A stretch of 64,000 nucleotides of DNA from Octopus sinensis (lineage: Eukaryota): positions 4,395-68,394 of the forward strand of contig NW_021835467.1 of the NCBI RefSeq assembly GCF_006345805.1, written 5' to 3'. Each line of letters opens with the position of its first letter. Position 1 is the first letter of the stretch. The notes under the pieces are model-generated. The model worked only from the letters and a program-made list of their open reading frames with translations. It did no database searches and had not been told where the DNA came from. A program made the position numbers and the translations under genes. Positions 9,961-63,303 of this stretch are shown piece after piece.

Positions 9961-10362
9961 AATTGCTCTAATAAACCTATATTCTATATATTTTTCATGT
10001 AAAAAACGTTCACATCCCAGTAAAAATCTAAAAAGTAATCAGAATATTGTCTGATGATAATTTCCCTGGTTGTCTGTACATCAGTGGATAATCTCGAAAC
10101 TAAATAACTTTAGTTTTTGAATTTTATATAACAATTTAATGGGGTACTAATATTAACTGGCAAGTATTCTACCTCTTCTCTTCACCGGCTACAACAAACG
10201 AGTCTCTAGGAAAAAGCGTTTTTCTGGTTTTCTATTTGTTGGATCAAATTCCAAAAACCAAAGCTATCAACATAGTAAATTAAATTGATATTATTAAATG
10301 AAAAAATTGAACATAATCTAATTGATTGTAAATAATTATTTCCAAGGGAATATAAACTAAAA

Positions 10363-13922: not shown

Positions 13923-14737
13923 TTTTGCTCATTTAGTATATAATTGTGCATTTAAAATAAAAGTAAATTATTTCGAAGTCAACAAATAGATTGCTTGTGT
14001 CGAACCATTAGTTGTAAAAACAATTATCGAAGACAATTATTTAAAGAAATTGGGTACCCACCAGAACCAATAGTTAAGAAATGAGGGAGCTGGCTTATAG
14101 CTGTTTTTTTACTATACTACAAACTTGCCAAATGTTATACACTTCCTTCGAAGGAGATTTTTTGCTTATTAAAAGAGTGAAAGAATGTTTATTTAGTTAA
14201 CAACTTCATGAAGATCTAACGACGCTAATATCACAATATTCACCGTTATTACATTTGCTTGATGATTTAGAATCGACCAATTTTACTATAAAAAAAGCAT
14301 TCAATTATTTGAAAACATTGGATTTTAAAGAAGACGTGTGTGGAATAAAAAATTATATTATCGAAAGGATGAATTCCAATGATATCACAAAAATTGTGAA
14401 TTTCGATGATCATTCCATTTCACCTTTAGATTATTCTTTGTTGATTGAATGTCAGGCAACATCGTGCGCAGTAGAACGATCATTTTCGATTCTTAACAAA
14501 ATCTTAACCAAGGATAGGAATTTTAAAGTGGATAATGTAAAATATTACTTAATTGTAAATAACTCGATAAACGATGAATAAAAATACTTTAAATTTTCAT
14601 AAACGTAGTTTATATATGAAAATAAAGTAGTATTTTTACGGTCAATTATTTGGTCAATTTTTAAAATTTTAAGGTCAATTACATTGACTTTTTAAGGGCA
14701 ATTTTTATTTTTTTAAGTCAATAAAAATGTTGCTCTA
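13923..14737 (+). mobile_element. hAT family-2 3' half with right TIR
   Basis: Near-copy of the 3' half of the element at 41371-43040 (CQATSCAVERSFS motif). It ends in ATGTTGCTCTA. Confidence 0.85.
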
Positions 14738-14797
14738 GTTATTAGATTTACTTGATGATTTAGAATCGACCAATCTTACTATAAATAGAGCATAAAA

Positions 14798-16980
14798 TTT
14801 TTTTTTAAATTAGAATTCAAAAACTGAACACGTATTTAATTAGTAGCAGAGGATAAGATGGAATGGCAATTCCCACGCAAAATGGCTATTGATATGCGTT
14901 GGAAAAGCCATGTCCGTTCCCGATGATCATTTCTCCTTCTGCTTGCCAGGTCCCCCAGTTTAATAAGTTAAATGATGATATCCTGCACTTTCAAGGAATT
15001 CCGAAGAATATCCTTTCCTTTGACCGATGATATGTTATTGGCCCACAAGAAAATAAATTTTATGATATCCTCCAAAGGTACTCTGGCTCCCTCTAGCCAA
15101 GTTCCTGTACATTTTTACAACGTATTTTATACCGGCTTTCAATCCAGAACTAGTTCTGCACTCTCTTTTGTGACAATACCATAACGGTGGCGTCTTTTGG
15201 TAAATTGAACAGGTTGAGTTCACGTCACATTTAAATTTATAACACGTGGGATTATTATTTTATTTTATTGTAATTAATTATAAAACACATATATTATCAC
15301 TGGAAAAAATAGTATTATTTTGAAACTCGCTAAAAAGTGGCTGTAGACTACTACAAAAGTACCGGAATTTTTTAGTTCTGGGACCGAGGACTCCCGACGT
15401 CTCCACTGCGGTGAGATAATGCACTGTATTTCTTGATTTTTAGCGTTTCGGCCAGGTTAGCTGCGGAGCCCGGCTCTGCGGCCATTTTCGAAAGGGAAAG
15501 TCGTTAGGCCGTCAGGACGTTTACCATCCTCCCGAACCTGGCCGACCGGTTCCAACTGTGATGGGAATCCGGCAGTTTCAAGGGTCCGCTTAACTATGTC
15601 GTTCAGGGCAATGTGTCGGGGAAAGCGTCCGGAGCTTTTCTGGCACGATAATGGGTGCAATTCAAAGGGGTCAACAGTCGATCCACAGCGGCACCGGTGT
15701 TTTCGGCATACGTTTAGTCCCAGGCGCAATGAGACGACGATCCTCAGGCAATCGTCGTTCAATAAGGTTCCAATAGATCCCATAGGGATAGCGGTCAACC
15801 AAGCCCCCGAATATGGTTGCGAGGGAGCCAATAAACAAGCCAAGTGATGTTGGTTAAACTTAGGCTTGAGGTTGTTCGACTTCTGATCACAGAGAATCCT
15901 GTCCCATTCGTCTTGTGCGTGTGTATTCTGTGGAAGCTCAAGAGACATCCCAAGCCAGCGACTTTCTGCGGCGACTGACTCTGAGTCCATAGGAGATTCG
16001 GTAACGGGTTGGAGAATCTCTTGGACAAGGGTGCTCGTGGCATGTGTAGGAGAAAGAAATGCTGGCAAAGAAAGGTCAGTGGCTGACCGCACACCGATGC
16101 CGCCACGACCGATGGGGAGTGTTGCCTGTTCCCAGCCAAGATCGTCAAAGAAGGCATTACATATTGATTCGAGGCAAGTCCTGAGAGCATGGTCGAATCT
16201 GGAGAGGCTTTCGGGATTGGCAAAGCATGGAGCGCTTCTAAGTGTAAACAATAGTTTGGGGATGGCGAAACAGTTCCTCAATAGAAACAGGGCCGAATGG
16301 GAATCGATGATACCAAGATTACGGGACATTGATACAAGGTTTGGTGTTTTTTCTGATAATATCCAAACGACACCGGTGTTAAAAATCGGGGAACCCAGAA
16401 TCTTGAGATTACTGGGCGAGGTGACATGGATGTTGGGAAGTAATGATTCGATAGAACCATGGGCAACGGAGAAACGGTAGACATCATAACTGATGTTAAA
16501 GATTTCAGATTTTGGGGAATTGATTTCGAGGCCAATTGCGTTTAATGCAGAAATTAAAACTCTCAGGTCGTCAAGAACGGATTCGAGAGTACCTCCGATA
16601 GTGGCATCGTCCAAATACCACGCATTGAAAACGAAGGATACACTTCTGGCAACGGGATCGATTGCCAGGGCAAAGAGAAGAGGACCCAGAGGGTCGCTTT
16701 GTTGGACACCGTTGCAGGACGAGATTGAGTGATCGCCAGCGATAAGGAGGCTGGGGCGACCGTAAGTCAATGCGACCAGGCGGGCAATAAAAGGTGAACG
16801 CCGGATAATAGATTCAAATACTACGTCCCGACGAACGCTGTTAAAGGCGTTAATCAGGACCAGCTTGACTAGAAGGCAAGGGTTATTCGGCCTATTTTGT
16901 GAGGCGGAAATGAGCTTCCTTGTTGCATGGACTACGGCTTCACAGCCGCCTTGGACGCCGACTCCAAGTTGTATTGGGCA
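14798..16980 (-). mobile_element. 5'-truncated CRE-clade retrotransposon (RT + zinc knuckle + RLE), interrupted by a Merlin-like insert and itself inside a hAT fragment
   Basis: Motifs PIQLGVGVQGGCEAVVHA, NAFNSVRRD, GVQQSDPLGPLLF, WYLDDATIGG, CRCGSTVDPFELHPLSC, KRPDG and AVETSGVLGP. The frame resumes after the insert as DHRERTWLFQRISIAILRGNCHSIL, with poly(A) at 14798-14806. Confidence 0.88.
14955..15355 (-). mobile_element. Merlin/IS1595 (ISXO2-like) transposase fragment with a 28-nt intron
   Basis: Removing the GT-AG intron at 15105-15132 gives WYCHKRECRTSSGLKAGTWLEGARVPLEDIIKFIFLWANNISSV, typical of the Merlin N-terminal Cys region; a GPGK remnant follows. Confidence 0.6.
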
Positions 16981-23429: not shown

Positions 23430-25200
23430 CAATCAATCAACAACTTTATTTAGGTAACAACGAATAGTATGTGGGGTAATAATTAATGAAACGGTAAGGC
23501 TTGCTTACCGACTTCTTCCGCGAAACAAAAAGAAAGGAGGGACCCCAACCTCTCAGTATAGAATTACCTTTGCAGGTAAGTCCCAGTGACTGTTGACCAG
23601 AGTTTGTAGTTTTTGATGTTTTTTTCAACGATTTCCCCCACCGTAGGCGTTTTAGCCTCGAGCCATGGGGGAATCGGCCATTCCAGGCTTTGGGAGTAGG
23701 CGATTTTTAACGCCAGTCTCCGAGTTTTCTCAAACTTCTCGATAATGGAACTCCTCTTTCTAGAGAAGTACCATGCCTCTTTTCCAAATATAAGTCCTGG
23801 TAAGTACACCGTGTTAAAAACATAAAGGAAAGTATCTGGTTCCAGATTTAACTTTCTTAAGCAAAACAGTGCGTTTGTTGCTTTCTTTTTTTCGAATTTT
23901 CGCATTTTCAGTGTATTTACCATTTTCTTCAATTTGCAATCCCAGGTATTTTATTGAATGTTGTCGTGGTATGTTAGTAATCAGACAAGGTGAATTTTTA
24001 AGATTTCTACTTTCTGTGATTCTCAACAGGGCAGACTTCTCACGTGCGACAACCAGCATGTTATTTCTGCACCAAACTTCGATTTCTTCCATATATGACA
24101 GCATTCGTTGTTCAGATAAGGCAGGTTTCGGTGAAGCATCGAGGATGACCACATCATCATTAGAATTTCCGTCCGTACATTGTTTGGGGAAGGTAGATTA
24201 CTCATGACAATGTTAAATAACAGAGGACTGAGTACTGATCCCTGGGGGACACCTCTTTTTAATTTTAGCTCATCCGAGTCGTGGTTCAGTAAGCTTACCA
24301 CCGATCGTCTGTCGCGGAGGAAGTCCTGTAACCATAGGAACAGTTCTCTATCTATCTGACACTTCGCCAGATGTCTCAGAAGGCCAAAATGCCATACACT
24401 GTCGAATGCCTTCGAAATGTCAAGACAGGCCATCGTCAGAGATCCCTTGGTATCCAGAGCCTTCATAATTAACGAATTTACCGTATAATGACAGTCCCCA
24501 CAAGAGCGATTTCTGCGGAAACCCCACTGCACATTTTTTAGAATATTTTTGCTCTCCACATGTTCCGAGAGTCTCCACAGCATTATCCTTTCCATGATTC
24601 GGCTGATGGAAGGAATCAGGCTTATCGGCCTATAGCTTGTTGGCAAATAGCGAGGTTTTCCCGGCTTTAGTATCATCCTAACCTCCGTTAATTTCCAGGA
24701 GGAGGGGACGTATCCCAAATGAAGACTACAGGAGAAGAGACATCTCAAATATTCATAAAGTTCCCTCGGTGCTTCTTTGAACAATCGCATTGTTATCTTG
24801 TCTCTTCCCGGGGCATTATCCTTTGAGCATTTTATTGCGTCCTCCACGTCTTTGCAAGTTATAGCTTTCGTGCACAAAGGCAACAAGCTGAGGAGTCCAT
24901 CCAATTCTTTTTTCATATGACACAGTGCTGGGCCAGATAACTGTAAGTCCGGGTTGACCTCCTGAGTTTCTTTAAGACTGTCTCCAAATATATTTGGGAT
25001 TTCTTCAAGAGAAGCGGGGGATCCATCTTGATTTAACAGTTTCGGTATTGTTTCCTCGGATTTTGAAGTGGATAATTTTCCGAAAACCTTCCAAAAGTTT
25101 GGATTTGCTTTATGTAATTTATTGCACTCAGCTTTCCATTTTTTATTCTCAGCAGCAATTGTGGTGAAACTGATGGGAATGATAATAAGGTGAAACTGGT
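23430..25200 (-). mobile_element. APE-type LINE ORF2 (RT), 5'-truncated and frameshifted
   Basis: APGRDKI, YRPISL, QWGFR, LDISKAFDSV, GVPQGSVLSP and a YxDD region; frameshifts at about 24150 and 23930. Confidence 0.9.
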
Positions 25201-25908
25201 GGGAATGAAATATTCGTTTTATTTCAAACAATATTTTTACCAGAATTATATGTGGTACCGATAGTGTAAAAAGTTTTGTTTTTAAGAAAGTTTCTTCTCA
25301 TTAAAAACCACCATACACTAAACTAAATTCCAAAGACAATTTTAATATTTGTTGGATCTAATTTTGTGCTTACAGTACCGAAGAGCATCTTCGTAATATT
25401 GAAGCTCGGAATTTAGACAAAAATCGATCTTAACCACCAACTGCCAAAAAGAATTAACGAGTAGTTATATTATTAGTGTATATTAAATTATTTAAAAAAG
25501 TGACAAGTTGTCTCAAATGCTTTAAATATTACATGATAAAATAACCATTGAAAAAGCAACTAGAATCTGTTGTACTGAATGGAACTCTTGAAAGTATGCT
25601 AATTAAATACAAGCATGGGATGAAGGTATCTGGTGATAAATACGCCTCTGCTACCGACCAACTTGTGAAACTGACATGCTTTTGGGACACGTCAATTGAA
25701 GCTATGGGACATATAACAACTTTGTTTGGCGGAGAGTTAGAGAGCGATAAGAGTAAGGAACTAATAGCAGATTCTCCCCTTAAATGAAAGAGAGATTTCC
25801 AACAATAAAGCGTGAAAATGTTAATTAAATAATGTAACCTTAGTTAAATTTGATTTGGTTTCAACAAAATTTTTTGTAACTTAAAAAGTGACAAATCAAT
25901 GAAATATA

Positions 25909-29880: not shown

Positions 29881-30295
29881 GAATAAGATATGTCACCAGT
29901 AGTCGATGATCACTCGAGGTAATCGTGCCACTGTAAGTATGGAAGTTTGTGAGTAACGTCTTCTGTGTTTGTCTGCATAATATGTAATCGATTTAGTTAA
30001 ATGTATGGACAAGATTTCTGTAGGAGCATCTCCTCTGGCCAGTCCATAGCATAACATTTCGAGCTGCAAGTCGAAATGCCGTGTTACAGAGGAACAGTCC
30101 AAAAGACTCCCCGGACAGATTTTTGATCTCGTGCTGGACTTCCTGGGGACCGACACGCATCCGTCCATCACCAATATCAACAAAAACTATTTGGAGGAAG
30201 ATTTTTGCAACATTTAGCTGCCTGCCACTGACGAAAGGGTAATTTTTGAAATCCACATTCTATAACTTCTAAGACTCAAGTTCAGTTTCCACTTT

Positions 30296-30535
30296 GCAGG
30301 CCCACGGCGCTAAAAAACCAATATCGTCTACACTTACAAGGTTGTCTTTTCGGGTCATTCCAAAGCCGTGAGGAGCAGCGAAATTTCCGTGATCCAGGAC
30401 GAGGTGATCATGTTGTTGGGGGACTACCATGAGGCTGATTGGTGTTATGTAATATACCACACTCTACTCCCAGGTCATGAAACTCGACTCCAAGTTGACA
30501 GGGTACGTTGCGGGAGTTTTATACAACCAACTGAT
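30296..30535 (+). pseudogene. SH3-domain exon(s), frameshifted copy
   Basis: EISVIQDEVIMLLGDYHEADWCYV...DRVRCGSFIQ; 1-bp loss relative to the copy at 49410-49655. Confidence 0.6.
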
Positions 30536-30604
30536 TAATATTTAACACTTAATTATAAGGTGGCTACCCTATAAAACAATACATCTACACTTCTTTAGAC
30601 ACCA

Positions 30605-31473
30605 ATGTCAGCAAATTGTTCACTAATTGAAATATCCAAACTCCACCCACTTGCAAACCAACTCTCCGGCCACGGACTCGACTCCACTGCACTCAAATGT
30701 AGTCCTTATTTCACATCAAAGTCTTCTTTGAAATACCTGGTGGCTTCATTGCCAAACGACTTAAAAAGTATTCTCGCGGTTACCAGGAGGGTGACTTTTA
30801 CCAAAATATTTCCCACTCTGCCGACCAGTTTTTCACCAAATTGTCCTCATTTTCCCCCAAATTCCATGGCCTGGCGCATGACAAACAAGGAGGTGTGGCA
30901 CTTCTTTATGTGCAGGGCAGTACATTTACTTGGAAAACATATTCCGGAACTTCACCAAACCGACATCCGCCGACATCAAAATTGGGTTCCTCAAAAAAGA
31001 AAAGTACCCGGCAGCCGACCAAATCATGTTTCAAATAAGTGGAATGAAAGTATTCGAGAGGAAGCACTTTTAGGTCCACCAACCTGACGGATCCTGCCAC
31101 ACCCTCTACAAGTCGGACGGAGCCAACTGGACGAGCATACTATCAGGGACGGTGAGGGGTCTTTGTCATTTCAGAGTTGCAAAAGTTTTTTCTGCAAGAC
31201 CACAAGTTGGGGGACGGAAGGAGACGGAAAATATTGGCTGAGTTAAGGGACATGCTCACTCTTTTGAAGGCCCAGTCAGCATGGCACTTTGTTTCGAGTT
31301 CGGTAATAATCGCCTACGAGAACGAGAACGTGTCCAATTGGAGTGAGGGACAGGTGGCTGTCAACATCATTGACTTTTCCCACGCTTCTCCTGCCCAGTC
31401 GAGGGACATTTATTCAATCAATGGATTGGCTAATTTAATTAATTTCATTTCGAATTTATTCGATTTGGTTTAA
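30605..31473 (+). pseudogene. Inositol polyphosphate kinase (IPMK/IPK family), frameshifted paralogue
   Basis: KPTSADIKIG (PxxxDxKxG), SSSVIIAYE and IIDFSHA. GGACGG-AGCC lacks one C relative to copy B near 31120 (real loss or assembly error). Confidence 0.8.
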
Positions 31474-31929
31474 TCAGACTCAATCACTTATTCTTTCATT
31501 TCACACAAATTCACTAATACATCTCCTAATTTGATTATTCTAATGACTATTCATTCAAAAAGATTACATCTAATTTATCTACCAAATAAAAAACAAGATT
31601 ATAGTTAGATAGCAATTCTACATTTTGCAAATTTGCCATTCCTTTCCCAAAGAATTAATTTTATTTTAACACTTTCCAAATAATTTCTGGATAAATAACA
31701 TTGAAAACGCCCAAAGATATATCAAAATATTCTGAGAAACTCTTATAATGTACACTCTAATTTGAAATAATAAATTAAGTAAGTTTATTCAAATTGTTTT
31801 TTATTTGTATCAAAGCATTATCTTTTAGGAGATTGTGTTTTCAATATTTTCCATAAGGTTTTCAGAATTATAACAGCATTAGTTCGGCTTTATCTCCTAT
31901 TGATTGGGACAAGATACATAATTTCTAAA

Positions 31930-33812: not shown

Positions 33813-34711
33813 ATGTTGGATGATTATCTAAGTGCATACGAAAATAGCATTGAGTGTGTATAATTTATTTTGAAAAAAATATAGTTCATCCGTCGATTCC
33901 GAAAAATATTACCAAGTCTTGGGCGGATTGCTTTGCTTGGTACATTTGTGGACGATTCGTTCCGGATGGTAACAAAGCATGGAGATCAGCGAAACTATTT
34001 TGTGAATGTATGGAAAATAGGAAGAGCAGTGGCTACATTTATGATAATAATAAATTTATTGACTCAAATAATTCCCGTTGTGATGATAATGATGCGACGG
34101 AGAGTACGGATAGCCTGTTGTGTTCTGTTATTTAACATAATATATCAAGTATTATATTTACTAATCGTAGCACATCGTCTATCGGATGCGACTGTTTGCT
34201 ATATTCAAGTTTGATAAGCGATAACCAGATAGAACCCTTTCCCTTTGCGGTGTTGTGCTACTCCTTTATGCTGAATCGTTTGTGGAGAAGATGACTAATG
34301 TGGCTGGTCTTCCAGAACTGCAAAACGATAAAGGGAAAGAGTATTTCAAACTTATTGGACGAATATTTGTTATACTCATCCTGTTCAGTCTTGTAGATAC
34401 GTCAAGCATTTTAAGCTATGTACTATCATACTATAATATTTCAGGGAGTCATTGCGCCAATCTGTTCAATTCCTGCCATTATGCTTGTCCTCGGATATCG
34501 TGCTCAGTTTGCTTCTCTTCTCCTTTCAATTGTTCTCGTCGTTAATATGCTTGTTGCCCACCCTTTCTGGCTTCCCAGCCTTAACTCATATACGGCCGAG
34601 TATTACTCTTTTGAGTTTTTCCAATCCTTGTCTGCGCTTGGCGGATTTCTCATTGTTGTTGCTCATGGACCAGGAGTAATCAGTTTTGACGAGTTTAAAA
34701 AAATGGAATAA
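33813..34711 (+). CDS. SURF4: Surfeit locus protein 4 (Erv29) cargo receptor
   Basis: LPSLGRIALLGTFVDDSFRM...DQRNYF, FFQSLSALGGFLIVVAHGPGVISFDEFKKME* with a C-terminal dilysine. Confidence 0.92.
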
Positions 34712-35202: not shown

Positions 35203-36207
35203 ATGCTAGCAATATTATTCTTGCTGAACTTATCAAGTATTCTGAACTAGTCCAGTAATAATAAAATAGAGGCAGGAGATATATGTAAAAAGGGAAAATG
35301 CTATTCTCTTTTTCCAAATGATCTCCTTTCATTTTCAGAAGCCACAAATATGTGTTTAAAGTCAAAGAAATTCCCTCTTACGATAAAAGACAGTGATGAG
35401 CTTGGCACAATTTTGGGTGAGCGTATTCAGTATATTTTAAGAATTATTAAAAATCACAAAATTTAATTCGATCGCTATCTGGCTTGGCTATAACGACATT
35501 ATGATGGAGGGCTTATTTGTAGATCATAACGGGGATCCAATGGCAATTGTTTATTATTAAAATCTTCAGACATATTCTAACTGGTACAAGACTGAGCCCA
35601 ATAAACAAAATAAACGTGAAGACTGTGTAGGAATGGACATAAAAACCGGAAGATGGTTCGATTACCTCTGTTTTGCAAGACTACCTTTTATATGCCAGTA
35701 CACAAAGGATACTGCAACTACCACTCTTGCTTCAAGTGGACAATAAATGTATATCTTGTAGAATTACAAGAAAAAAAACTCCCGGACCTAAAAATTAGTT
35801 TGCAAATGACTAAAACTTTCCCTGAAAACCCGGTAAAAATGGCCGCTGACGGGGATAAATCTACATGCGCCATTTCGAAAGGAAATTTTTATGCACAGAT
35901 GAATTATTCGTTCAGCAAAACAGTCCTTCTTAAAAAGATCATCATATACTCTGGAAAGACAACACTAGGTAGTTTCAGTTTCCTATAGTTTACAGAGCGT
36001 CCTCGTTACTTTGATATCATTGTGGTGACTCCTGAAGAAGACAGAATACAATGCACTCGAATTACTGATGCTAAACTGCCCCCGAATTCTAAGAACGAAT
36101 TCAAATGCAAAAAAGAAATATTAACAAACAAAATTATTTTTAAAAGTTACAAATTGCAGGCAACACTCTCATTTTGTGAACTAATAATCGAACACTCGAC
36201 AAACTAA
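35203..36207 (+). CDS. Secreted C-type lectin domain + F-type lectin/discoidin-like domain protein
   Basis: Signal-like MLAILFLLNLSKA; CTLD with IWLGYND, NWYKTEPN, EDCV and WFDYLC...FICQ; second domain AADGDKSTC...KIIIYS...C...FKC...LSFCEL. Five micro-introns, including GC-AG at 35543-35569. Confidence 0.8.
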
Positions 36208-36649
36208 TACATTAAATTAACAAATTTAATATATAACTCACTTTCTTATATAATTTATTTTATTTCAAAATATACTCTTGCGCTCTGTCATTTAACTGCC
36301 TATGAGTCACATGCCGATTATTTCCACTAAACATCTCTAATGACTCTCTAATCGTGGAACGATGCCTGTCCAGGCAGTAATCTACTCACCTCAAAATGGT
36401 TTAGTCATATCCGCTTTTTTGAATTTTATAAAAATGTAGTTTCTGTCGAAATCCTGTGATCTTTGAAGAGATTGTTCGACGATATCTATCCGGTATCTGG
36501 GTCTTAGGATGGGCGAGAACCCAATCTATTCACTCCACGTAAGAAAAAGGCCATGGCAGCTTTCTGTTTTAGACGCTCTCCGTTTTAGACGTGCATCTGG
36601 ACTCAAAAACCTTTATATTTGTCTATCATACACCTATTCTTCCAGTCTT

Positions 36650-37110
36650 TTATTTAAACTGTAAGCGTGGTACTACTTTAAACAGCATCAGAAAATCGTC
36701 TCAGAATTAGAAGATTCGCCGCCACACACTGAAACTAGCATTTAAACATAGGCTGAACAATCATATCCCCGGATGGGTAGATCGTGGGATCCCTACAGTA
36801 AAAGAGATAAAGTAATATATTAAGTTCTACGTGAAACGAATTTTCAGGCGATAAGATCACAAATACAGTGCAAAAATGAACTCACTTTCTTTCGAAAAAT
36901 TTTGCTATTGAAAACGGCCGTCTTGATTATCTCTGGATTAACAATTGAAGAGATAATTACATTTATACGAGTTGAGAAAGTAGCTGACATGAGACATCAG
37001 TGGAACCTGCTGGGCACATTGAAGTTGTATCCTGGCCCATGAGTCTGACAGAAGGAGGAGAAGCAAGAAGAGTTAGTAATAGGGATTTATCAAAGTCACA
37101 TATCAATTTG
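36650..37110 (+). mobile_element. Probable R4-like RLE 3' remnant
   Basis: 3' end (GAGACATCAGTGGAACC...GCCCATGAG) resembles 22580-22612; heavily decayed. Confidence 0.4.
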
Positions 37111-37252
37111 AATATAAAAACTTATTTTTTCAGACTTTCTTGGTCACTAATAAAAGGGAAATTAATTTGAATTAAGATGTATTTTATTAATAATAACATT
37201 TAATAATTAAAATTTTCTCTTTTTGTTGCGCAATATTTTTAATATATATTTC

Positions 37253-40200
37253 ATGCAAGATCATAACAAATCTAAATTGTCAATTTCGTCTGTCTCGCAA
37301 CAAAATGATCAGATCTATTCTCCAGCTCAATCAAACCAGATAACTCCAGAAGAAAGAGAAAACTGTCGAAAGTGGCTGTAATAGGCCTTTTTTATTTTAT
37401 TTAGCACAAATAAATTAATTGATAATAATACAGCTTACTCTTCTGAATTAACCAATATTGTAGCCCGTAAAGAAATGGAGATATTTGAGATATCTCTTGG
37501 CAGAGTTTGCTAAAGTGAATTAATTGGTAGGTTGACTACCGAAACCGTTTGCTTGAAGTATTGCAGAAATTACAAAATAGTCCTGGAAGCATGATAAACC
37601 TGAGAGCCCACGTAGATGAAAAGAAGACCAAAAAAAGTAAGAGAATGCGATGAAATTGTGAGATGTCAGCAGTGAAGACATAAGCGAGGAATTTTTGAAA
37701 GTTGTAGATATTCTGTGGGATTCCGTCCCCGATTCATTCGTTTTCCGTTACCCTGTGGATCCTGTAAAAGACATGGCTGAGGTTGATTTTTGGTCGGATT
37801 TCAGGATTATTATGACATAATAAAATCCCCAATGGATTTGTCGACACTCAAAAGCAATTTGTCTGGGAAGATGTACACTTGTCCGTGGAAATTGATTGAT
37901 GATGTTAATCTCATTTTTTCAAACGCACGGAAATACAACGGATCGAAGAGTAATATAACTCGAGCGGCAATGAGAGTAGAAAAGAGGTTACATGAGTAGT
38001 TGTCAGCAAAATTTAACGAAGTGGGAGATGAGGCGATGAATAGATTGGGCTACTGCTGTTCGAGGACTTATTTATTTAACCTTCGTGTGCTTTACTGCTG
38101 TACTTCTTTAAGTTGTCAGATTGGGGCAGATGCTGATTATTTCTCATATAAAAAGTATATATTCAAAATTTATATAAGGGAGGAGGAGGAATACGTGTGT
38201 TGTGTCAAGTGCTTTAATTCGGCCGAGGAGAAAATCACCATATCACCTGACTCGACTCAACTCCCCAAACAAGACTTTGTCCAAGCCAAAAATAATGTAA
38301 GAGAGCCTGAGCCTCTCGTGGATTGTGTTGAGTGTGGTCGCCGTGTGCACCAAGTGTGCGTACTTTACCACGAGGAACTTTATTCTGGGGGGTTTGTGTG
38401 TCGCATGTGTATGGAGAGTCCTTTTTCACCAAAGTTTACATGCAGAAGTAAGTCTATGTCTGATTTGTAGACCTTCCTCAAACGAGGTTGAGCGTGTATA
38501 TTGAAGAGAGAATTAATACCTTTCTACGAGCGGAGAGTGGTGGGATTGATTTTGGGACGGTCTTGGTGAGGGTCGTCTCCTCCACCATAAAAGAGTGCAG
38601 TGTGAAGCCTCTGTTCAAGTCAAAGTTCGGGGTAGACATGCCGGACGTATTTCCATACAGAGCAAAGACTCTTTTTGTGTTCCAGGTGCGTGGTGGGAGG
38701 GAACTGGCATTCTTTGCCTTCCATACACAGGAGTACGACTCGGAGTGTCCTGAACCTAATAAGCGGTATATCTATATCTTAATTGAAGGCGTGTATACAT
38801 CTCCTATCTTGACTCAGTACACTTCTTTGAGCCAAAATTCATCCGGACTCGGGTATATCACGAAATTCTAATTTCTTACATGGACTACGTACGTAAACTG
38901 GGGTTTGGAGTGAATTAAATGCTAGTTACGCGTGGGTGCACATCTGGGCATGCCCTCCAGGTGATAGAGACGACTACATATTCTACTGCCATCCTTTTGA
39001 GCAAAAGACTCCTACGGCTAAACGTTTGATTGAATGGTACAAAGTAATTCTTAACAATGCGATAAACCAGAAGGCAATTCGTTCATACCAAGTAAGTTTG
39101 TTTTGCTAAGTGGTAGGACCTACACAGTTGTGCGCATGAGAACGCAATAACTTGTCCAACTCAAATCCCGTATATGGATGGAGATTTCTGGCCCGCTAGA
39201 ATAGAGGAAATGATCAAAAGTGACGAGGAATGTAAAAAAGAGAAAAAAAGTAGTTTGTCGGACAAGTTGATGAACATGCTTGACAAGCAGCGAAGTGGCT
39301 TCTTTGTTATTGAATTGCATTCGAGCAGACTGAATTGTCACCTCACAACAATCGTCGACCCTGATCCTCCGATGAAGTGTGAGCTCATCGACAGTCGCGA
39401 TTCTTTCCTTACCTTTTGTCGAGATAAAAACTACGAGTTCTCCACCAAAAGAAGAGCCTTTTATTCTACTCAATCCATTGTAGTTGAGTTGTGTCTCCAT
39501 CACTTGATGTTTCACTGCAACAATTGCCAAAAGGAGATTGTACATGAAAGACATCACTGTAATCAATGCAGCGACTTTGACTTGTGCCAAATTTGTGCAG
39601 AAAATAATTCGCATCCTCATCCTTTAGTCAGAATTGGCCTCGATAAAGCAGACACCTCCACCATAATTACAGATGCAGCAATAGAAAAGTGGAAGGGTAA
39701 AGTGGGACACACTGTTTTCTGCCACGACTCAAAATGTGGGCGGCCTCTCTGTTCTCAGTATCGAGAATGTCTACTTCCACATTATATGAATAACATGTGT
39801 CCTCATCGTCAAACATGCAAACTTTGTAGAATTATTATTCGAATTTATGAGACACATATTTTGGACTGCACTAACCAGCATTGTGGAGCTAAATTGTGTA
39901 ATTTGTTCAAAAGACGCTTAAAAAGTATGCAAGCACGGAAACATGCAAGAGAACAAGATCAACTTTTGAGAAGAATGAACACTATGAAAATTGCCAATGG
40001 AGATAAACAACTTCTGAAAACTAATCAGCCAATTACTCGCACACAAAATCCCTTAATGCCTAACTCTCCTTTCCTAATTCCTCAGCCCAAACGTCCTCTT
40101 CTCATTCAAACCAATTCTGCAGTACGCTTGTCTCCTATTAATTCACCCCTCCCAGACTTGAGTATCAAGAATAAGTTACGAAACGGTCGATTTCCTGATT

Positions 40201-40295
40201 TTTCCGAATTGGAGCAGCGACTCAACTGTGAGCCCGATGCTGCTGAGAAGGAATGGACGGATAGTCAAATCATTCGCTTCTATCAACCAGATTGA
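37253..40295 (+). CDS. CREBBP: Miniaturised CBP/p300 histone acetyltransferase (KIX-like, bromo, RING, PHD, HAT, ZZ, TAZ2)
   Basis: [56 protein letters not shown]...[19 protein letters not shown] (CNNC...[10 protein letters not shown]) and TAZ2 Cys/His pattern; about ten 23-27 nt introns. Confidence 0.95.
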
Positions 40296-41370
40296 TTATT
40301 TTTTGTTTTAAATACATTTTATTCTTAATTCAATAATTTTGAGGTTATATCATAACCTTTTGTAACATATCTGAAAATTCTTTTCCCGTCGAATCTACTT
40401 TTTTGTTAATTTAATCAACGCCATCTTGATTTTTATACTTTTCGATTTTCATAGTATAGCTTTATTTAAAAATCATTCTCTCTAAAGTGTTTTAAAATGT
40501 TGTCACCACTCTATCGCATGTAAATAAAATAGGGATTACCCCGACATTTTTGTTCTGAACCTTCCAGTGCACTAAAAATTACCTCTGGGTGTTATGATTT
40601 TCACTTAGATTGCTTTCAGTTCATTTAACATTAATTTTATGAAATGATCGGATGAAATTCATTAACATCAATTTAAGTATTCATAGACATTGGACCAAAA
40701 TAGAGTGCAGATGCTTTATTTTTTAGTAAATATTCACGTTGGATTTTTATCAAATTCAATATTGTCAATTTACTTAAATTTCAAGTATTTTATTTTCAAG
40801 ATAAGAATACTGAGAAATCTTCCTTTGTTTGCCGGTTGAAATTGGATATGACTGTCCATAAGTATTTGACAGATATTCTAATCACTTTTTCGAATTCTCC
40901 GAGCTCAATACCGGGTGAAAGTTGAATGTTTGAGGATAACTCTCTTAAAGAAAGTTGAATGTAATAGTTTTGACTTAATAACTACTTAATACGGTTTATA
41001 TACAATTTAGTGTAAACTTTCAAATGGTACTTGAAAGTGAGAAATCTTGCAATCGTAGATTTTCTACTTTCAAGACCAGCAAGATCCCCGCTTTTCTTAA
41101 GCAAAACTGGATTTCTAAATATACAAATACCTACAGAACAGTCATTGCTTGCTCTCGTGTCTATTAATTGCGGTCAATGATTATTGTTTTTTACCGCCGC
41201 GGGAATTGAGCCTCGAAGAGCCTAAGATCGTTTTGAGATCAAAAAACCTTCATGGCTCCTCTAAATTAGTCCCAAACGGATCATTTTCAAAAACGCTTGT
41301 CTTTAAAAAGTCGAATAAACCGAAATTATCTGACATCTCAGCAATTTTTTATAATCAAATTAGTAATAAC

Positions 41371-43040
41371 TACAGCAACATTTTTATTGACTTAAAAAAA
41401 TAAAAATTGCCCTTAAAATTTTAAAAATTGACCAAATAATTGACCGTAAAAATACTACTTTATTTTCATATATAAACTACGTTTATGAAAATTTAAAGTA
41501 ATTTTATTCATCGTCTACCGAGTTATTTACAATTAAGTAATATTTTACATTATCCACTTTAAAATTCCTATCCTTGGTTAAGATTTTGTTAAGAATCGAA
41601 AATGATCGTTCTACTGCGCACGATGTTGCCTGACATTCAATCAACAAAGAATAATCTAAAGGTGAAATAGAATGATCATCGAAATTCATAATTTTTGTGA
41701 TATCATTGGAATTCATCCTTTTGATAATATAATTTTTTATTCCACACACGTCTTCTTTAAAATCCATGTTTTCAAATAATTGAATGCTTTTTTTATAGTA
41801 AAATTGGTCGATTCTAAATCATCAAGCAAATGTAATAAAGGTGAATATTGTGATATTATCGTCGTTAGATCTTCATGAAGTTGTTCATTAAATAAACATT
41901 CTTTCGCTCTTTTAATGAGCAAAGAATTTCCTTCTAAGGAAGTGCATACTTGAATAACATTTGGCAGGTTTGTAGCATAGTAAGAAACAGCTTTAAGCCA
42001 GCTTCCCCATCTCGTAACTATTGGTTCTGGTGGGTACCCAATTTCCTTAAACAATTGTCTTCGATAATTGTTCTTTACAACAAGTGCTTTAATACAAGCA
42101 ATCAATTTATCAACTTCGGGACAATATACTTTTATTTTAAGTGCACAATTATGCACTAAATGAGCAAAACATGTGATATGGTATAGACTGGAATATAATA
42201 GCTTGAGAGTATTTCCTGCAGAAACCATATATGGAGCAGCATCGGTAATAAGGAGAGAAAAATTGTTTCTTTCAACATTCATTTTCCAAATAGTGTCATC
42301 AATTATTTGACTGATGATAGAAGAATTCGGAGAGGAATCAATTTTTATACAATCTATTAGGTAAGATCTTTGCGGATTTTCCAACTAGACAATTCACAAA
42401 TTTGTCTCCCAACACCAGTTTCGTCCACAATCAAAAAAACCTTAACAATTATACTATTCCAATAGACTAACTTTCTTATTTGAAATTAAATTAATTATTT
42501 TGGATATCTTTTGTTGTGCTAAAATTTCTACCATATTGCGGCAAGTAATCTCTGAAGGAAGTGGATGCCCGATACTTCCAAATAAGTTGATAATTGCTCG
42601 ATATCTCAATTTATAGAGCGGAATGTAAAAATTGTTTCTTGCATGTCACATGTAACTCACATAATTTACAAAAAAGCATTCCATTTGGTGTAATTGTAAA
42701 CTCTTTAGGATATTTTTCACAAATATTTTTAGCTTTTTTAAAATCCGAAGGTTTATTTTTAGGCATAAATACACTATAATTTAGTTTAAAATTTGTTAAA
42801 ATAAGAGACAAATGTCACTGCGACTATTTTAAATTTATTTTGATGCTTTAAATAATATTATTTAAATTTTTATTTAAAAATTGACCTAATTAAAAAAATT
42901 GACCTGGAAATCTAAAAAGTTGACCAAATTGACCTAAAGAACTTTTTATATAAACTTTTTTTTGACTTTATTTTAATTTAATCATTATTTTTAGACTTAA
43001 CTCTGGATTGAAGTTGACTTTATTGACTTATGTTGCCCTA
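41371..43040 (-). mobile_element. Full-length hAT family-2 transposon with frameshifted transposase
   Basis: TIR TAGGGCAACAT / TACAGCAACAT, 8-bp TSD GTAATAAC (41363-41370, 43041-43048), N-terminal LFCKLC zinc finger, VDET, ITDAAPYM, CFAHLVH, VTRWGSWL and SCAVERSFS. Confidence 0.92.
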
Positions 43041-43542: not shown

Positions 43543-43765
43543 CCTCAAACGAGGTTGAGCGTGTATATTGAAGAGAGAATTAATACCTTTCTACGAGCGG
43601 AGAGTGGTGGGATTGATTTTGGGACGGTCTTGGTGAGGGTCGTCTCCTCCACCATAAAAGAGTGCAGTGTGAAGCCTCTGTTCAAGTCAAAGTTCGGGGT
43701 AGACATGCCGGACGTATTTCCATACAGAGCAAAGACTCTTTTTGTGTTCCAGGTGCGTGGTGGGA
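43543..43765 (+). repeat. 223-bp identical copy of a CBP HAT-domain exon segment (38476-38698)
   Basis: No mismatch seen by eye between the two copies. Confidence 0.9.
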
Positions 43766-44364
43766 TGGGAACGGGTATTTACGACTAAGTATGATCTTAC
43801 ATTTTTGATGTAATAATGTCTTTTTTAAATAAATCTATATTAATCTCTGGTCTTCTTTTCAGTCCCTTTTCTATCAATTATATATTCATAAATTTCAAAT
43901 AAATATTATTAAAATTACACCCCAGTGGTCGCAAAAGCAAAAAAAACAAGATCTATTTTTTGAACATTTCATTGCCATAATGATTTTTTGGAACATGGTT
44001 TTATAAGATTTTCGGCCTCTCAACTAGGTGCTACAAAATAATTCACCTGTCTAAATTAGATTAATTCTATACTCTTGTATTGCACTTAAAAATATTTCAA
44101 GTAGATTGACACTCATTGTTTTTCTGCTTGGGCAAATAGATGATTTGCAAAGTGACACAATAATCTCTCCACCTTTCTTTTTCCATACATTGTCTGTATT
44201 TAACCACATGGAGTCTAAAGTAATTGTCATTGACAAAATACTCTTGCCGCATAGTTAAATATAATAAAATATTCACGTGTTAAGCACGTAATATTATTTT
44301 TTAAACTCTTCAATTCCAATTGATAAAATTAAGGCAGGTTCGAGGAAATAAGACTACGCAGTTT

Positions 44365-45950: not shown

Positions 45951-46184
45951 TGTTTCTGCTCTTGATTATTAAAATTACTTGGCTTATTTTTAGACAGAGT
46001 TTGATAGAAATTAATCATGATTACAAATAAGATCATTAAATTATTATAAAACGTGAGTTTAAATTGTATTAATTAATTATTAATCTTAGATTAGCTCGAA
46101 AAAATTCAATTTAAATAGCATTTATACCATTTTTGAATCATATGCGATAAGTACTGGTTTAAATCGGATTTAAAAATTAAGTTA

Positions 46185-46500
46185 GTTTTGATCTAAAACT
46201 ACTAATGATCGAGAAAACGTTGCCTTTCAGGAGCGCAATGGAGATTCATTGGAAGAGCCATTGCTTCTCCCGAGGCTTTTGTCGTCTTTTGGAGATCAGT
46301 TGCCAGATTCTCCCAACGAGTTCCAGAATATTTCGGATATTTGTCTTCGAGAAAGTGTCGGTGGACGTAGAGTCCCACGCGAGGCATTTCCCATTAATCC
46401 ACGGAAAACGGTGACTCCATTTCCCGTCTCCACGTTCAAGCCCAACATGTTCAAGTTCGGTGGCTATTGCTCTGTCCTCTTGACACCAAGATCCCGAGCA
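46185..46500 (-). mobile_element. CRE 3' fragment with internal deletions
   Basis: GLERGDG..VTVFPWINGKCLAWDST...REKQWLFQ*ISIALLKGN. Confidence 0.8.
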
Positions 46501-49409
46501 AGCTGTATATAATCGCCATCCTCTTCATCCTTATTTATAAGTGCTCTTCTTGTAGCCATATCTGGTTTAATTTTTTGTCGTATAGAGAAATGTCTGGCTT
46601 GCTATATTGAATTTTTGATTCGGTTGGAATAGTATTATCAATAAGGAACAGTTTGAATGATATTTAAATATTCATCAAATTTTGATTTCTCAAAACGGAG
46701 ATCGATAATTCTGAATTAATTTTTAGGGATTAAATCGGGTTTGTAGTTGTTACGACATTCCCATATGTTTCTGTTGCTGCTATCGTAGAAAAATATCTTA
46801 TTATTGGTAGTCATTGCTTAAAACAATAAAATGATATTAAATCCAATTTTTATATTAGATAGCGTGAACTGAGGCACTTCTACAAACCGCACCCAATCAT
46901 CACAGTGCTGGAATACCTTTTCGGAAGCAGTTTTTCAGGTAAATTTTTATATAAATTATGGTCGAAAGCACGGATCAAATTTCAATTTTTTGTAGAATTG
47001 TACGTCACTGAACCCGAGTTGCGCCAAATTTTTTTATCAGATTTATCAGATTTTTTTTATTTTTTATTCTTAAAATTTTTATAAATTATGACGAATTCTA
47101 CGATTTCCAAATTTAAATTGACACTAAAAATTTTTTTTAAATCGAATCTTAGAATCAACGGATTTAAGAAAGGCGAATTTGGGGGGATTTACTGTACACT
47201 TAAGTTCATTCAAACATGGATACGAAAACTTTCGTTTACTATTGGAAGCATGTGTGGAGCCTATATGGTGAAGCTTCTTAGTGAAACAGAATTATTATTG
47301 TAAGAAAAAAATCCGAAGAGGCATAAAAGTGTCTCATTTCCAGTTGGTCGACCATGCCGCTGTTGTTCTCTTCATGGACGACTCTTCTCCAATGGAAGGG
47401 AAGGTTTTGAATCTGTTTGTTGGAGACAGTAGAACTACTTATATGTTGGCGAATGGACTGTTTTCAGCAATTGTGAGTTTACAGGATTCCTTGTTAACTG
47501 ATTTGTGTTCTCTTTGTGTGTGCTATATGAGCACCATGTCTCTGTGGCACACCTCTTACATTGCCCCGCAAGCAGGATGTTTTCTTGTTCCTGTGGGGTT
47601 CAGTGCGGCGTTTAATCCAAATTTTTCCCAGTCAGTAAGTCGCACACACTTAAATTAGAAAGAGTCAATATGATCAAAGCAGAGTGTGCAAGTGACTTGA
47701 TGAGTCTCATGCGTGGAATAGAGGAGCCCTTTGATACAAATCTTGTTTTGAATTCAATCCATATTTGCTAACTGAAATGGAGTTTGGCAAAACATCAAAG
47801 CATAATTCGGTCAATTTCCCATCTGATGAGTTATTCTGCCTCACTCACCAGTTTTGTCGGCTTGATTCTTGCGCTCTCTCCGTCTCGGAAAATTCCAGTT
47901 TTCGCCCTATTTGGCCCAAAAATGGAGGCTGTGTGTCAATTATATTGTTTTTTTTGAATGGCGGGTAAATTAGTGACAAATTTCTCGCCCTTTTCAATTA
48001 TTTCAATATGTTCTTTGTCAAAATGAATATGTGGGTTCATGAGCCTGTGAATGAAGTATGAAATGGTTACATTTAACAAAGAGACTCAGTTTGGAGACCT
48101 GCCGTTAACAGAGGAAATGAAGGGAGACTGAAAGTTGACTGAAGAGCTTCTTGTACATTTATCGTCCGCCATGCCGCTGTTGTTCTCTTCATGGGCAAGA
48201 GTTCTCTTATGTAGAGTACAGCGCAATCCATTCAAAAAAAAGATGAAACAAGTATAATCATCAAAATAAATGGCTTATACCAATTCGCCTACTCTGCAAA
48301 AAACTCTTAAAGTAAAAAAATTGAAGGCAGTAAAAAAGAATCAACTTCGTTTCGTTAAAACATTGATACAAAATAAAATCCTCATAATTAAAAATTTTAA
48401 TATAATTTCAATTTTATTATTTGGTTGAAAAAATATTACTATTATTAATGAGGTAGATTTATGCGAGTTAATCAATCTGTAGAGAGCATTCTGGCTCATG
48501 ATGTTCAGGGCTCTGTTTCAGATTACAGAAAAGACTGCCAAATTTAGGAATTGCTGAAGTAGAATCAAAACTTTAAAAAATCAGCTCGCTATTCTTGAGC
48601 ACCTCTATAGCCCTGAAGATGTATTTCTCTCTAAATGCACAAAATGTGTCGTTGCTACCCTAAACCTTCTGTCCATAATAAAGAGAAAAACCCGATAACT
48701 TTTAAAGTTTCAACCAATTACATCTGAAGTGCTAGCCTTATTTAAGCCTGAACTTTAACGTCTCTCAGAATAAATCTGCATTACTTTTTTGACATGCAAA
48801 AAGCTCTATTCCCAGTAAAAATCCCTAAAGGAGTACGAATTGCCACAGCAACGTGTCTCTCGGATGGAATTGGCCACGCACTGTCCTCTCACAGTTGCGA
48901 ACCCTGGCTAAAGGTTATATGCTTTGTCGCACTCGGAGTACTCACAACAGAATCGGAAAACAATAATAAAGAAAAAAACTCCCGCATCAACTTAATCAAG
49001 AAACTGAAAGGAAACAGAATGAATTTTTGCAGTTGTCACAGGCCTAGGGTGTTACCAAGCCTAGGTGGCTACACTTTCAGACTTTAAATAAAATTCAAAA
49101 AAATATTTGAATTCTATTTCAAAATCTATTTTGTCAAAATAAATATTATAAAATGACAAATACCTTACAAAACAGAACAGAAATTTTTATTGTAAAGAAC
49201 AAGAGACTGGTACAGAAATTTTTTGACGTCGATACAACAAGACGGCAGCAATTGCTGACCCGTTAAGCAATAACCTAGGGACGTGCCTAATCGCTGCATT
49301 GCACGCATTTTTGTACGTGCAATGTGATCATCAAACTTACCGGACGGCTTAAAGAGCACTTGTAAAATCCACATTCTAGGACTTCCAAGACTTAAGTTCA
49401 GTTTCCAAT

Positions 49410-49655
49410 TTGCAGGCCCACGGCGCTAAAAAGGCCAAGATCGTCTACAATTACGAGGTTATCTTCTCGCGTCACTCCAAAACTGTGGGCAGCAGAAACA
49501 TTTCCGTGATCCAGGACGAGGTGATCATGTTGTTGGGGAATTATCATGAGGCTGATTGGTGTTATGTAATATACCACACTCTACTTCCAGGTCATGAAAC
49601 TCGACTCCATATTGACAGGGTACGTTGCGAGAGTTTTATACAACACAGTGATTAA
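49410..49655 (+). CDS. SH3-domain C-terminal exon(s) (endophilin-B-like by eye); upstream exons unresolved
   Basis: AKIVYNYE...NISVIQDEVIMLLGNYHEADWCYV...RVRCESFIQ*. Confidence 0.55.
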   Translation: MQAHGAKKAKIVYNYEVIFSRHSKTVGSRNISVIQDEVIMLLGNYHEADWCYVIYHTLLPGHETRLHIDRVRCESFIQHSD

Positions 49656-49721
49656 TATTTAACACTTAATTATAAGGTGGCTACCCTATAAAACAATACA
49701 TCCACACTTCTTTAGACACCA

Positions 49722-50591
49722 ATGTCAGCAAATTGTTCACTCATTGAAATATCCAAACTCCACCCACTTGCAAACCAACTCTCCGGCCACGGACTCCACT
49801 CCACTGCACTCAAATGTAGTCCCCATTTTACATCACAGTCTTTTTTGAAATACCTGGCGGCTTCATTGCCAAACGACTCAAAAAGTATTCCCGCGGCTAC
49901 CAGGAGGCTGACTTTTATCAAAATATTCCCCACTCTGTCGACCAGTTTTTCACCAAATTGTCCTCATTTTTCCCCAAATTTCATGGACTGGCGCATGACG
50001 AAGAAGGAGGTGTGGCACTTTTTTATGTGCAGGGCAGTACATTTACTTGGAAAACATATTCCGGAACTTCACCAAACCGACATCCGCCGATATCAAAATT
50101 GGGTTCCTCAAAAAAGAAAAGTACCCGGCAGCCGACCAAATCATGTTTCAAATAAGTGGAATGAAAGTATTTGAAAGGTAGCACTTGTAGGTCCACCAAC
50201 CTGACGAATCGTGTCACACCCTCTACAAGTCGGACGGACGCCAACTGGACAAGCATACTATCAGGGACGGTGAGAGGTCTTTGTCATTTCAGAGTTGCAA
50301 AAGTTTTTTCTGCAAGACCACAAGTTGGGGGACGGAAGGAGGCGGAAAATATTGGCAGAGTTAAGGGAAATGCTCACTCTTTTGAAGGCCCAGTCAACAT
50401 GGCACTTTGTTTCGAGTTCGGTAATAATCGCCTACGAGAACGAGAACGTGTCCAATTGGAGTGAGGGACAGGTGGCTGTCCACATCATTGACTTTTCTCA
50501 CGCTTCTCCTGCCAAGTCGAGGGACATTTATTCAATCAATGGGTTGGCTAATTTAATTAATTTCATTTCGAATTTATTCGATTTGATTTAA
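49722..50591 (+). CDS. Inositol polyphosphate kinase (IPMK/IPK family), intact copy (258 aa after four 23-24 nt introns)
   Basis: HPLANQLSGH, EADFYQNI, KPTSADIKIG, FQISGMK, SSSVIIAYE and IIDFSHA, all in one spliced frame. Confidence 0.88.
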
Positions 50592-50720
50592 TCAGACTCA
50601 ATAACTTATTCTTTCAATTCAAACAAATTCACTAATACATCTCCTAATTTGATTATTCTAATGACTGTTCGTTCAAAAAGATTACATCTAATTTATCCAC
50701 CAAATAAAAAACAAGAATAT

Positions 50721-50826
50721 AGTTAGATTGCATTTAGTTAACGGAATTACTAAATTAATGTATGTAAAGCAGAAGAACTGATGGCGATCCAGTTTCCCCT
50801 CACTGCAAAAAAAAAGTTAGATTGCA
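50721..50826 (+). mobile_element. 82-bp poly(A)-tailed retro-insertion with 12-bp TSD AGTTAGATTGCA
   Basis: TSD at 50721-50732 and 50815-50826; the insert is absent from duplication copy A (about 31600-31615). Confidence 0.8.
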
Positions 50827-61734: not shown

Positions 61735-63303
61735 TTACAAAGGAAAATCTCTAATATATACACCCCTCGTCACCGAAAACCAGACATTCATCTGTCCTAT
61801 CAAAAATCCTCGAAAAATTTGTCCTGAAATCAATCTACCCTTTCCTCACTCTATCAAAGTCACAACATGGCTTCCGTCCGCAGCACTCAACAACTACACA
61901 CCTATCTTGTTTAACAAGATTCATTGCAGACGGATTTAATAACTACTCCCCTCCCCATCGAACAATTTTGGCCTCAATTGATATCAGTAAGGCTTTTGAC
62001 CGGACTTCACGACATGTCCTGAGCTCAAAAATTCACTCTTCTCCTATTCCCCATCGCCTGAAAATCTGGCTGTGTAGCTTCTTATCTGGTAGACTGGCTC
62101 AGACAAAATTCGGGTCAAAAAACTCCCGGTTTCGCTACTTACCTAATGGGGTCCCTCAGGGCTCCTGTCTCTCTCCAGTTCTCTTCAATCTACACCTCAG
62201 TGATATGCCTACTAATTCGGAAACACTACTCCTCTCGTACGCTGACGACATAGTGATTGCCTCAAGAAACAATTCCATCGACGCTGCAACAAACTCACTC
62301 CAAACTCATCTAGACTCTCTAACCAAATGGCTAGGATCTAACCATATGACTCCTTCTGCGTCCAAATCGTCCATCACTGTTTTTACATCTGATAAAAGAC
62401 AATTCAACCTAAACCCAGTCCTCTATGTGGCCGGTGAAATAATTCCTGTTATAAAAAACCCGAAAATCCTTGGAGTCGTATTCGATCAATGCCTATCTTT
62501 TACGCAACACGCGGAGCTCATTTCAACCAAAGCCAAACGCAAACTGAATGCACTACGTGCCTTATCTGGACAAACTTACGGCCAAGCCAAAGAATGCTTC
62601 ACTTTGGTTTACAAACAATTTGTCAGAACATTAATGAACTATGCTAGTCCAGCATGGTCATGGAACTTGTCTTATTCAAACCTCCAAAAACTCCAAAGAA
62701 TCCAAAACTCAGGCCTACGCACAATAACTGGCTGCCTTGCATCCACTCCCATCGATCATCTTCATTGGGAATCTTGTATCCTTCCGGTCGAAGACCATTT
62801 GACGATGAGAGGACTCCAATTCCTACAGGAAATACAAGACTTTTCTCATCCAAGTCACAAAATCTCTATTCCAGAAAACAAAAGACACATCATTTCTACT
62901 CTGGCCGATCAATGTAGATGTCTTTCAAAAATACTCTCAACCAACAATGGGAAAACTGCGAATAAACTAATCCATGACTACATCTCCTCTCGTGCTATCA
63001 GGATGCTTAAAAACAACAAACTTTTCAACTCTCCCCCCCGCCGGTCCACTCCTCAGAGCAATCACTCGGCAGATATCTCCGTGTCCAGCTTGCTCAGATT
63101 CGCTCGGGACATCATCCACTCATTTTCGAAACATACCGTTCCTTCACCCCTGAAGACCTCTTCCCCTGTCCTGGACCGCCTCACTTGTCTCCGCCTATTG
63201 GGATTCGGGATCTCTGGGAGCGCCCGATCTTCGCGTCTCGCTACCTGATTGCAGCCGGCTTCCTACGTGTTAGTGAAGCCGGGGTAACATAACTAACTAA
63301 CTA
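61735..63303 (+). mobile_element. 5'-truncated APE-type LINE, largely intact RT, (TAAC)n tail
   Basis: RPIHLSCP-like start, QHGFR, SIDISKAFD, GVPQGSCLSP, SYADD and ILGV.FD; ends TAACTAACTAACTAA. Confidence 0.93.

Follow-up and report, generated by a model that had tools for sequence, protein, structure and literature searches.

Can an acetyltransferase of the CBP/p300 family do without its autoinhibitory loop? The activity of p300 and CBP is believed to be controlled through a long, lysine-rich loop that undergoes trans-autoacetylation. The question is raised by a gene at 37253-40295 of a 64,000-nucleotide stretch from the Octopus sinensis assembly (contig NW_021835467.1), which is called the window here. 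An earlier reading of its letters, the original prediction, had proposed a minimal CBP/p300 of about 930 residues that has lost TAZ1, the Q-rich tail and almost all of the loop. Our analysis supports a real, intact CBP/p300-family gene, which from its sequence would comprise the catalytic core plus ZZ and TAZ2. It probably encodes a functional minimal KAT3 (CBP/p300-family) lysine acetyltransferase that is loop-less, like an engineered core.

A CBP/p300-family gene with a shortened loop

The 11 exons of the gene (Table 1) join to a coding sequence of 2799 nt with no internal stop. The product has 932 residues, close to the length predicted. Each of the ten introns is GT-AG and 23–27 nt long, and the exon segments lie in alternating frames. 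In intron 3 (37637-37662), the frame holds only with the acceptor AG at 37661-37662, which makes a 26-nt intron. A better-looking acceptor, “tcag” at 37669, was ruled out because it brings in a stop. Intron 6 (38155-38178) is 24 nt, in frame and stop-free, and its retention would add eight residues (YIFKIYIR) within the RING region. Its splicing is supported by a sister gene on another contig, locus L001 (described below), in which the 26-nt intron at this site must be removed. The splice model as a whole is supported in the same way, since all seven introns from bromodomain to HAT have identical positions in L001.

Homology searches gave 861 homologues at E≤1e-20, every one of them CBP/p300-like. 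The best PDB matches of the 932-residue protein were p300 and CBP cores (E about 1e-168). Pfam domains were counted as present when they scored above the family gathering cut-offs. The bromodomain, RING and PHD are present in that order directly N-terminal to HAT, and ZZ and TAZ2 follow on its C-terminal side. TAZ2 scored 14.4 bits with Pfam zf-TAZ, below the cut-off of 25. A TAZ2-only hidden Markov model (HMM) made from 58 homologues gave 30.9 bits (E 1e-8 when the window was searched as fragments of all six frames). All three H-C-C-C zinc sites can be aligned with those of p300, with 12 of 12 zinc ligands present. By these measures the predicted TAZ2 is real but diverged.

The motifs SYLDS, WACPP and EWY, said earlier to be intact, were all read in the translation, at residues 452, 492 and 521. 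When aligned to p300 chains, the catalytic machinery is intact, with a set of 32 letters and the motif DSRD conserved, and alignment to PDB chains shows that the acetyl-lysine pocket Asn of the bromodomain is kept in “ARKYN”. With the catalytic and cofactor sites numbered as we take them to be in p300, the protein is identical at aligned D1399, R1410, T1411, Y1414, H1434, W1436, Y1446, K1456, R1462, W1466, Y1467, D1625 and D1628, and has Asp at the E1505 position. These residues are kept though identity is only 40–47% to the other metazoan CBPs compared and 52% to L001, which argues for purifying selection.

Human p300 and CBP (KAT3B and KAT3A) share the order bromodomain-RING-PHD-HAT-ZZ-TAZ2 with the window protein, which is about 44% identical to the p300 core. 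The L1 loop motif (WACPP...EWY) and the catalytic residues are shared as well. In contrast to the human proteins of about 2400 residues, the window protein lacks NRID, TAZ1, NCBD/IBiD and the Q-rich tail. Its autoinhibitory loop has about 11 residues compared with about 60 in human, and its KIX is barely recognisable.

To measure the loop, we used the spacer between the motifs GDFWP, which ends at 39194, and FFVI, which starts at 39300. The spacer has 35 residues in one open frame and no intron, exactly as had been read. It consists of two flanking helices and an 11-residue remnant (39222-39254). Seven lysines lie in the spacer, four of them in the remnant. We surveyed about 120 homologues that carry both motifs. 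Natural spacers were mostly 57–288 residues, and nine were 24–50 residues. The loop of the window protein is almost fully lost. The spacer was 84–85 residues in human p300 and CBP, where the prediction had given about 85, and 84–87 in vertebrates. Free-living invertebrates (sponge, hydrozoan, limpet, leech, sea star, amphioxus, rotifers and insects) all had 68–118 residues; a loop-less state is not common among those sampled. Parasitic flatworms and nematodes had 84–118 residues.

Natural spacers below 55 residues fall into two sets. P0001, P0010, P0087, P0110 and P0123 are evident gene-model or isoform variants, and the main CBP of each species is full-looped. P0079, P0176, P0185 and P0246 are environmental or transcriptome sequences. 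The lengths nearest to that of the window protein include 37 residues in P0123 (Stegodyphus isoform X3) and 40 in P0176 (Logan ERR11571142). P0246 (JGI 3300038702), P0185 and P0079 have 37, 47 and 50 residues. None of these five is close kin of the window gene, and none is on record as the principal CBP of any named free-living animal; most are fragments, predicted isoforms or sequences of uncertain source.

The window protein also resembles proteins that were cut by design. The engineered p300 crystal construct 7w9v_K (P0005) has a spacer of 28 residues. The loop-deleted chains 7w9v_K and 5u7g_A align with the window protein in a single stretch (e.g. query 108-721 to chain 11-626), whereas loop-containing 8hag_K needs two stretches, with 48 chain residues skipped. 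The engineered cores 4bhw_A, 5u7g_A and 7w9v_K are all colinear with the window protein. Unlike them, the window protein is natural and known from its sequence, has four remnant lysines, and carries TAZ2 and a short N-terminal extension.

TAZ1 was not detected anywhere in the 64 kb, in line with its predicted loss. A TAZ1 HMM (23 homologues) applied to all six frames gave a best score of 7.8 bits (E 0.7). Searching the window by tblastn with 19 homologues that contain the N-terminus gave chance matches only, and an N-terminal probe from L001, which carries its TAZ1 exon, gave no match. The upstream intergenic sequence holds no TAZ1-like coding sequence, and open reading frame fragments at 36467-37167 had no Pfam match. 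An in-frame stop precedes the ATG at 37253, and the AT-rich tract between stop and ATG has no AG acceptor. Thus no upstream exon with TAZ1 similarity was found in the window. The loss of the Q-rich tail was also borne out: the 120-residue tail is composed foremost of L, P, R, Q and N. NCBD/IBiD was negative by NCBD HMM and by Pfam, in the protein and in the window.

Of the original domain list, bromodomain, RING, PHD, HAT, ZZ and TAZ2 stand, and the KIX-like domain is weak. A KIX HMM made from 32 homologues gave 6–12 bits, colinear with HMM positions 9–76, and its score was matched by one in about 2000 shuffles of the window N-terminus. Pfam gave no KIX match in the window protein, and BLASTP found no similarity between this region and the KIX-like region of L001. 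The window residues aligned to CBP Tyr658 and Lys662, which we take to be pKID-contacting positions, are Gln and Asn. The KIX resemblance is the least secure domain call of the predicted protein. Elsewhere in the window, a weak “KIX” tblastn match at 30256-30375 was dismissed, as it lies within a 1.37-kb repeat that is also found at 49365-50735.

Table 1. Positions of the gene, its predicted domains and neighbouring features in the window.
Feature	Position	Residues	Strand	Remarks
Exons 1–6	37253-37377, 37405-37504, 37531-37636, 37663-37781, 37805-37975, 38000-38154		+	
Exons 7–11	38179-38447, 38471-38765, 38789-38902, 38926-39091, 39117-40295		+	
KIX-like remnant	37340-37578	30-91	+	exons 1–3; KIX HMM
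Bromodomain	37716-37969	129-205	+	Pfam PF00439, 64 bits, above cut-off
RING_CBP-p300	38036-38152	220-258	+	Pfam PF06001, 35 bits, cut-off 25
PHD_P300	38306-38413	302-337	+	Pfam PF23570, 45 bits, above cut-off
HAT (KAT11)	38429-39491	343-665	+	Pfam PF08214 match at 379-575, 146 bits; colinear with p300 HAT crystal chains
GDFWP-FFVI spacer	39195-39299		+	105 nt, 35 codons, one open frame, intronless
ZZ zinc finger	39504-39620	670-708	+	Pfam PF00569, 31 bits, above cut-off
Diverged TAZ2	39681-39932	729-812	+	TAZ2-specific HMM
C-terminal tail	39933-40292		+	120 residues, not Q-rich, no Pfam family
Stop codon TGA	40293-40295		+	end of the minimal CBP/p300-like gene
SURF4 gene	33813-34711		+	four introns of 22–27 nt; Pfam 74 bits for C-terminal part
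Lectin_C (C-type lectin)	35561-35743		+	31.7 bits; gene end about 35746, about 1.5 kb upstream of the CBP-like gene
Upstream intergenic	35747-37252		+	C-type lectin gene to ATG
hAT-like remnant	41504-42811		-	weak DUF659 and hAT-dimerisation matches over 41504-42384; downstream of the CBP-like gene

The sister gene and the host lineage

To place the gene, we searched 1.84 billion cluster representatives exhaustively with its exon-11 open reading frame (373 residues). An exact look-up of this frame matched no public contig. The best match in the exhaustive search, P0121, was an outlier with 204 bits, compared with at most 157 for the rest. P0121 is XP_029655242.1, “CREBBP-like [Octopus sinensis]”, from contig VCDQ01001334.1 (locus L001) of assembly GCA_006345805.1. 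This contig is 382 kb with 35% guanine plus cytosine (GC), and the gene lies at about 7483-11895. Its introns of 23–28 nt are not octopus-like, which suggests that the contig is probably a dicyemid contaminant in the octopus assembly.

The RefSeq model covers only the C-terminal 557 residues and skips one exon. In our model of the whole L001 gene, the splice junction near 8490-8545 is tentative. Its N-terminus is of low complexity and is followed by a TAZ1 exon that retains two of the three zinc sites (14.5 and 21.5 bits with TAZ HMMs) and a KIX-like exon (13.8 bits). The core has bromodomain-RING-PHD-HAT, then ZZ and a TAZ2 that is diverged too (56 bits). The spacer has 76 residues with 15 lysines and is split by a 28-nt intron, and the 250-residue tail is rich in N, Q, P and Y, with no NCBD. 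The 23-nt L001 intron at 9754-9776, at the position of window intron 8, is apparently GC-AG rather than GT-AG.

The window gene and L001 were sisters in 200 of 200 neighbour-joining bootstraps. Both have the motifs FFVIE, FCRD and IRSYQ, which occur in none of the 259 other homologues retrieved. They are 52% identical over 393 ungapped columns, and identity to the other metazoan CBPs in the comparison is 40–49% for each. At least four introns of L001 are additional to those of the window gene. Relative to L001, the window gene is without about 41 loop residues, the loop intron, more than half of the C-terminal tail, and the N-terminal low-complexity region with TAZ1. Given the degenerate TAZ1, lysine-rich loop and long tail of L001, the predicted absence of these parts in the window protein is a derived, lineage-specific loss and not an ancestral state.

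Among animals, introns this short are known only in Dicyema japonicum and myxobolid myxozoans (PMC13644364). The D. japonicum genome has 36.7% GC and 49% repeats (PMC6736024). The window has about 34–35% GC and many remnants of long interspersed nuclear elements (LINEs), hAT and pogo-like elements. Judged by these features, the gene would come from a parasite whose introns are ultra-short, most probably a dicyemid; this lineage is favoured because of the sister gene on an octopus-assembly contig together with the GC content. We found no mention of CBP, KAT11, TAZ or KIX in the supplements to the D. japonicum genome or in the main text on dicyemids and orthonectids.

Are the two genes paralogues? 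A check for a second full-length paralogue had been proposed. A loop- and TAZ1-bearing sister was indeed found, but it may also be a distant orthologue. We lean slightly towards paralogy. Compared with the stem that the two genes share, their split is deep, and no synteny was found when the L001 gene ±10 kb was compared with the window by tblastx and blastn. D. japonicum has Octopus sinensis as its host (PMC6736024), so it inhabits the octopus species whose assembly carries L001. What the two loci share is CBP-like genes, related LINEs and one 93-bp block. With less confidence, we suggest that the lineage has two KAT3 copies of ancient divergence, of which the window gene is one and the loop- and TAZ1-bearing form the other.

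A fuller proposal is tentative, and we hold it to be somewhat less probable than its alternatives taken together. It states that dicyemid-type parasites have two ancient KAT3 genes, duplicated independently of vertebrate CBP and p300. The L001-type gene would be signal-responsive, and the window copy would be a loop-less, core-only enzyme for unregulated basal acetylation. If so, the window enzyme would be a natural counterpart of engineered loop-deleted p300. Coexistence with a loop-bearing copy would mean subfunctionalisation of regulation and not simple loss.

Predicted regulation and alternative explanations

In p300, the substrate site is filled by the hypoacetylated loop until trans-autoacetylation lifts the block, with further steric gating by RING and TAZ2 (PMC12547938). 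Without its loop, p300 is constitutively active or more active, according to a passage of PMC12354013 that cites Thompson et al. 2004; such kinetics are known for engineered human constructs alone. The conserved residues suggest that the window enzyme would be catalytically competent. Unlike p300, it would have no hypoacetylated loop to hold it off and no activation by trans-autoacetylation, and it might behave like the engineered loop-deleted p300 core. Any leftover gating would come from RING and TAZ2. Targeting could use the bromodomain, ZZ and TAZ2, and perhaps the KIX remnant as well. The original description “naturally deregulated” stays an inference.

Several points weigh against a functional, loop-less enzyme of this kind, or against the two-copy setting proposed for it. 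Both the gene model and the predicted activity come from the DNA letters. The 5′ end was placed by the same means, and an upstream exon may be spliced into exon 1. Acetylation might still occur on the four lysines of the remnant. The protein keeps RING and TAZ2, and as these too obstruct the active site in p300, “always on” may be too strong. The window gene and L001 may be paralogues or distant orthologues. No window-type protein was found in a collection of 15 billion proteins, though the L001 gene is annotated; this result, like the limit of nucleotide-level sharing to one 93-bp block, is against paralogy or neutral. Since L001 is full-featured on a deep branch, the lineage may have a second, regulated CBP. 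In that case the window gene may be a copy that has specialised, and would not speak for simplification of the whole organism.

The best surviving alternative is that the enzyme is still autoregulated in compact form, with the acidic-basic patch EECKKEKK, RING and TAZ2 acting as a miniature autoinhibitory element. The lysines counted above fit this idea (seven in the spacer, four in the remnant), as do the retained RING and TAZ2, which are steric blocks of the p300 pocket (PMC12547938). The metagenomic homologue P0246, whose spacer has 37 residues, also has the patch GKKRKMKK, a hint that a small basic stretch may be selected for. However, the remnant is tethered at both ends and exceeds the SGGSG linker of the engineered construct by only 6 residues. 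The position of p300 K1499 is Thr, and the region that presumably holds the main autoacetylation sites is gone. We therefore regard compact autoregulation as unlikely.

Could the minimal architecture be partly an artefact? TAZ1 exons might have been missed upstream, or A-rich loop-coding DNA might have collapsed in the assembly. The gene model comes from sequence alone, TAZ domains score poorly here (14 bits with Pfam for TAZ2 and 14.5 for L001 TAZ1), and loop-coding DNA is A-rich with many homopolymers. In contrast, the HMMs that detect L001 TAZ1 found nothing in the window, and neither did the L001 N-terminal probe. The room upstream is bounded by the end of the same-strand lectin gene at about 35746, and the stop before the ATG with no AG acceptor in the AT-rich tract argues against a missed exon. 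A collapse would have had to delete about 120 nt in frame and a 28-nt intron without a frameshift. We consider such an artefact very improbable.

The gene might also be a duplicate headed for loss, either in decay or without catalytic function as a pseudo-enzyme or scaffold. This could be suspected from the long branch, the loss of several interaction modules and the local rearrangement marked by a 237-bp duplicated exon fragment nearby, but it is slightly less probable still, as no stop or frameshift occurs across 2.8 kb and 11 exons and all catalytic and zinc-binding residues checked are kept despite deep divergence from L001.

The functional loop-less KAT3 thus stays the reading that we prefer. 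Nature would have removed the loop nearly where structural biologists cut it, with the rest of the core under selection. The window enzyme would be a ready-made test of the need for the loop, and could show how much regulation RING and TAZ2 give alone. It would also show how much a parasite of about 30 cells can trim from a central metazoan co-activator.

Neighbouring features

The 237-bp fragment at 43543-43779 is a copy of 38476-38711, the first part of exon 8, and is 98.7% identical to it. The copy lies 3.2 kb downstream of the gene, past the hAT-like remnant, and crosses no intron. Its origin would be a recent local duplication of the DNA, or else an artefact of the assembly.

The SURF4 gene upstream (Table 1) was also reconstructed. 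Its protein gave no match at E≤1e-5 in a word-indexed search of 5.8 billion proteins, which shows that the proteins of this organism are highly diverged. A search with a LINE reverse-transcriptase open reading frame gave no match above 46% identity.

The 93-bp block lies at 46183-46275 of the window and at 6496-6588 of the L001 contig. The copies are 85% identical, with sharp edges and unrelated flanks, and the block is single-copy at each locus. With a stop in its L001 copy, it is non-coding. Rfam matched neither the block nor any other part of the window. Covariation in a two-sequence fold is weak.

Repeats are found throughout the window. The 1.37-kb element lies at 30249-31617 and 49365-50735 with 94% identity. 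A hAT-like element occurs at 13923-14744 and, in inverted orientation, at 41364-42169 with 91% identity. LINE reverse-transcriptase remnants lie, for example, at 61755-63245, 24023-25231 and 15457-16770.

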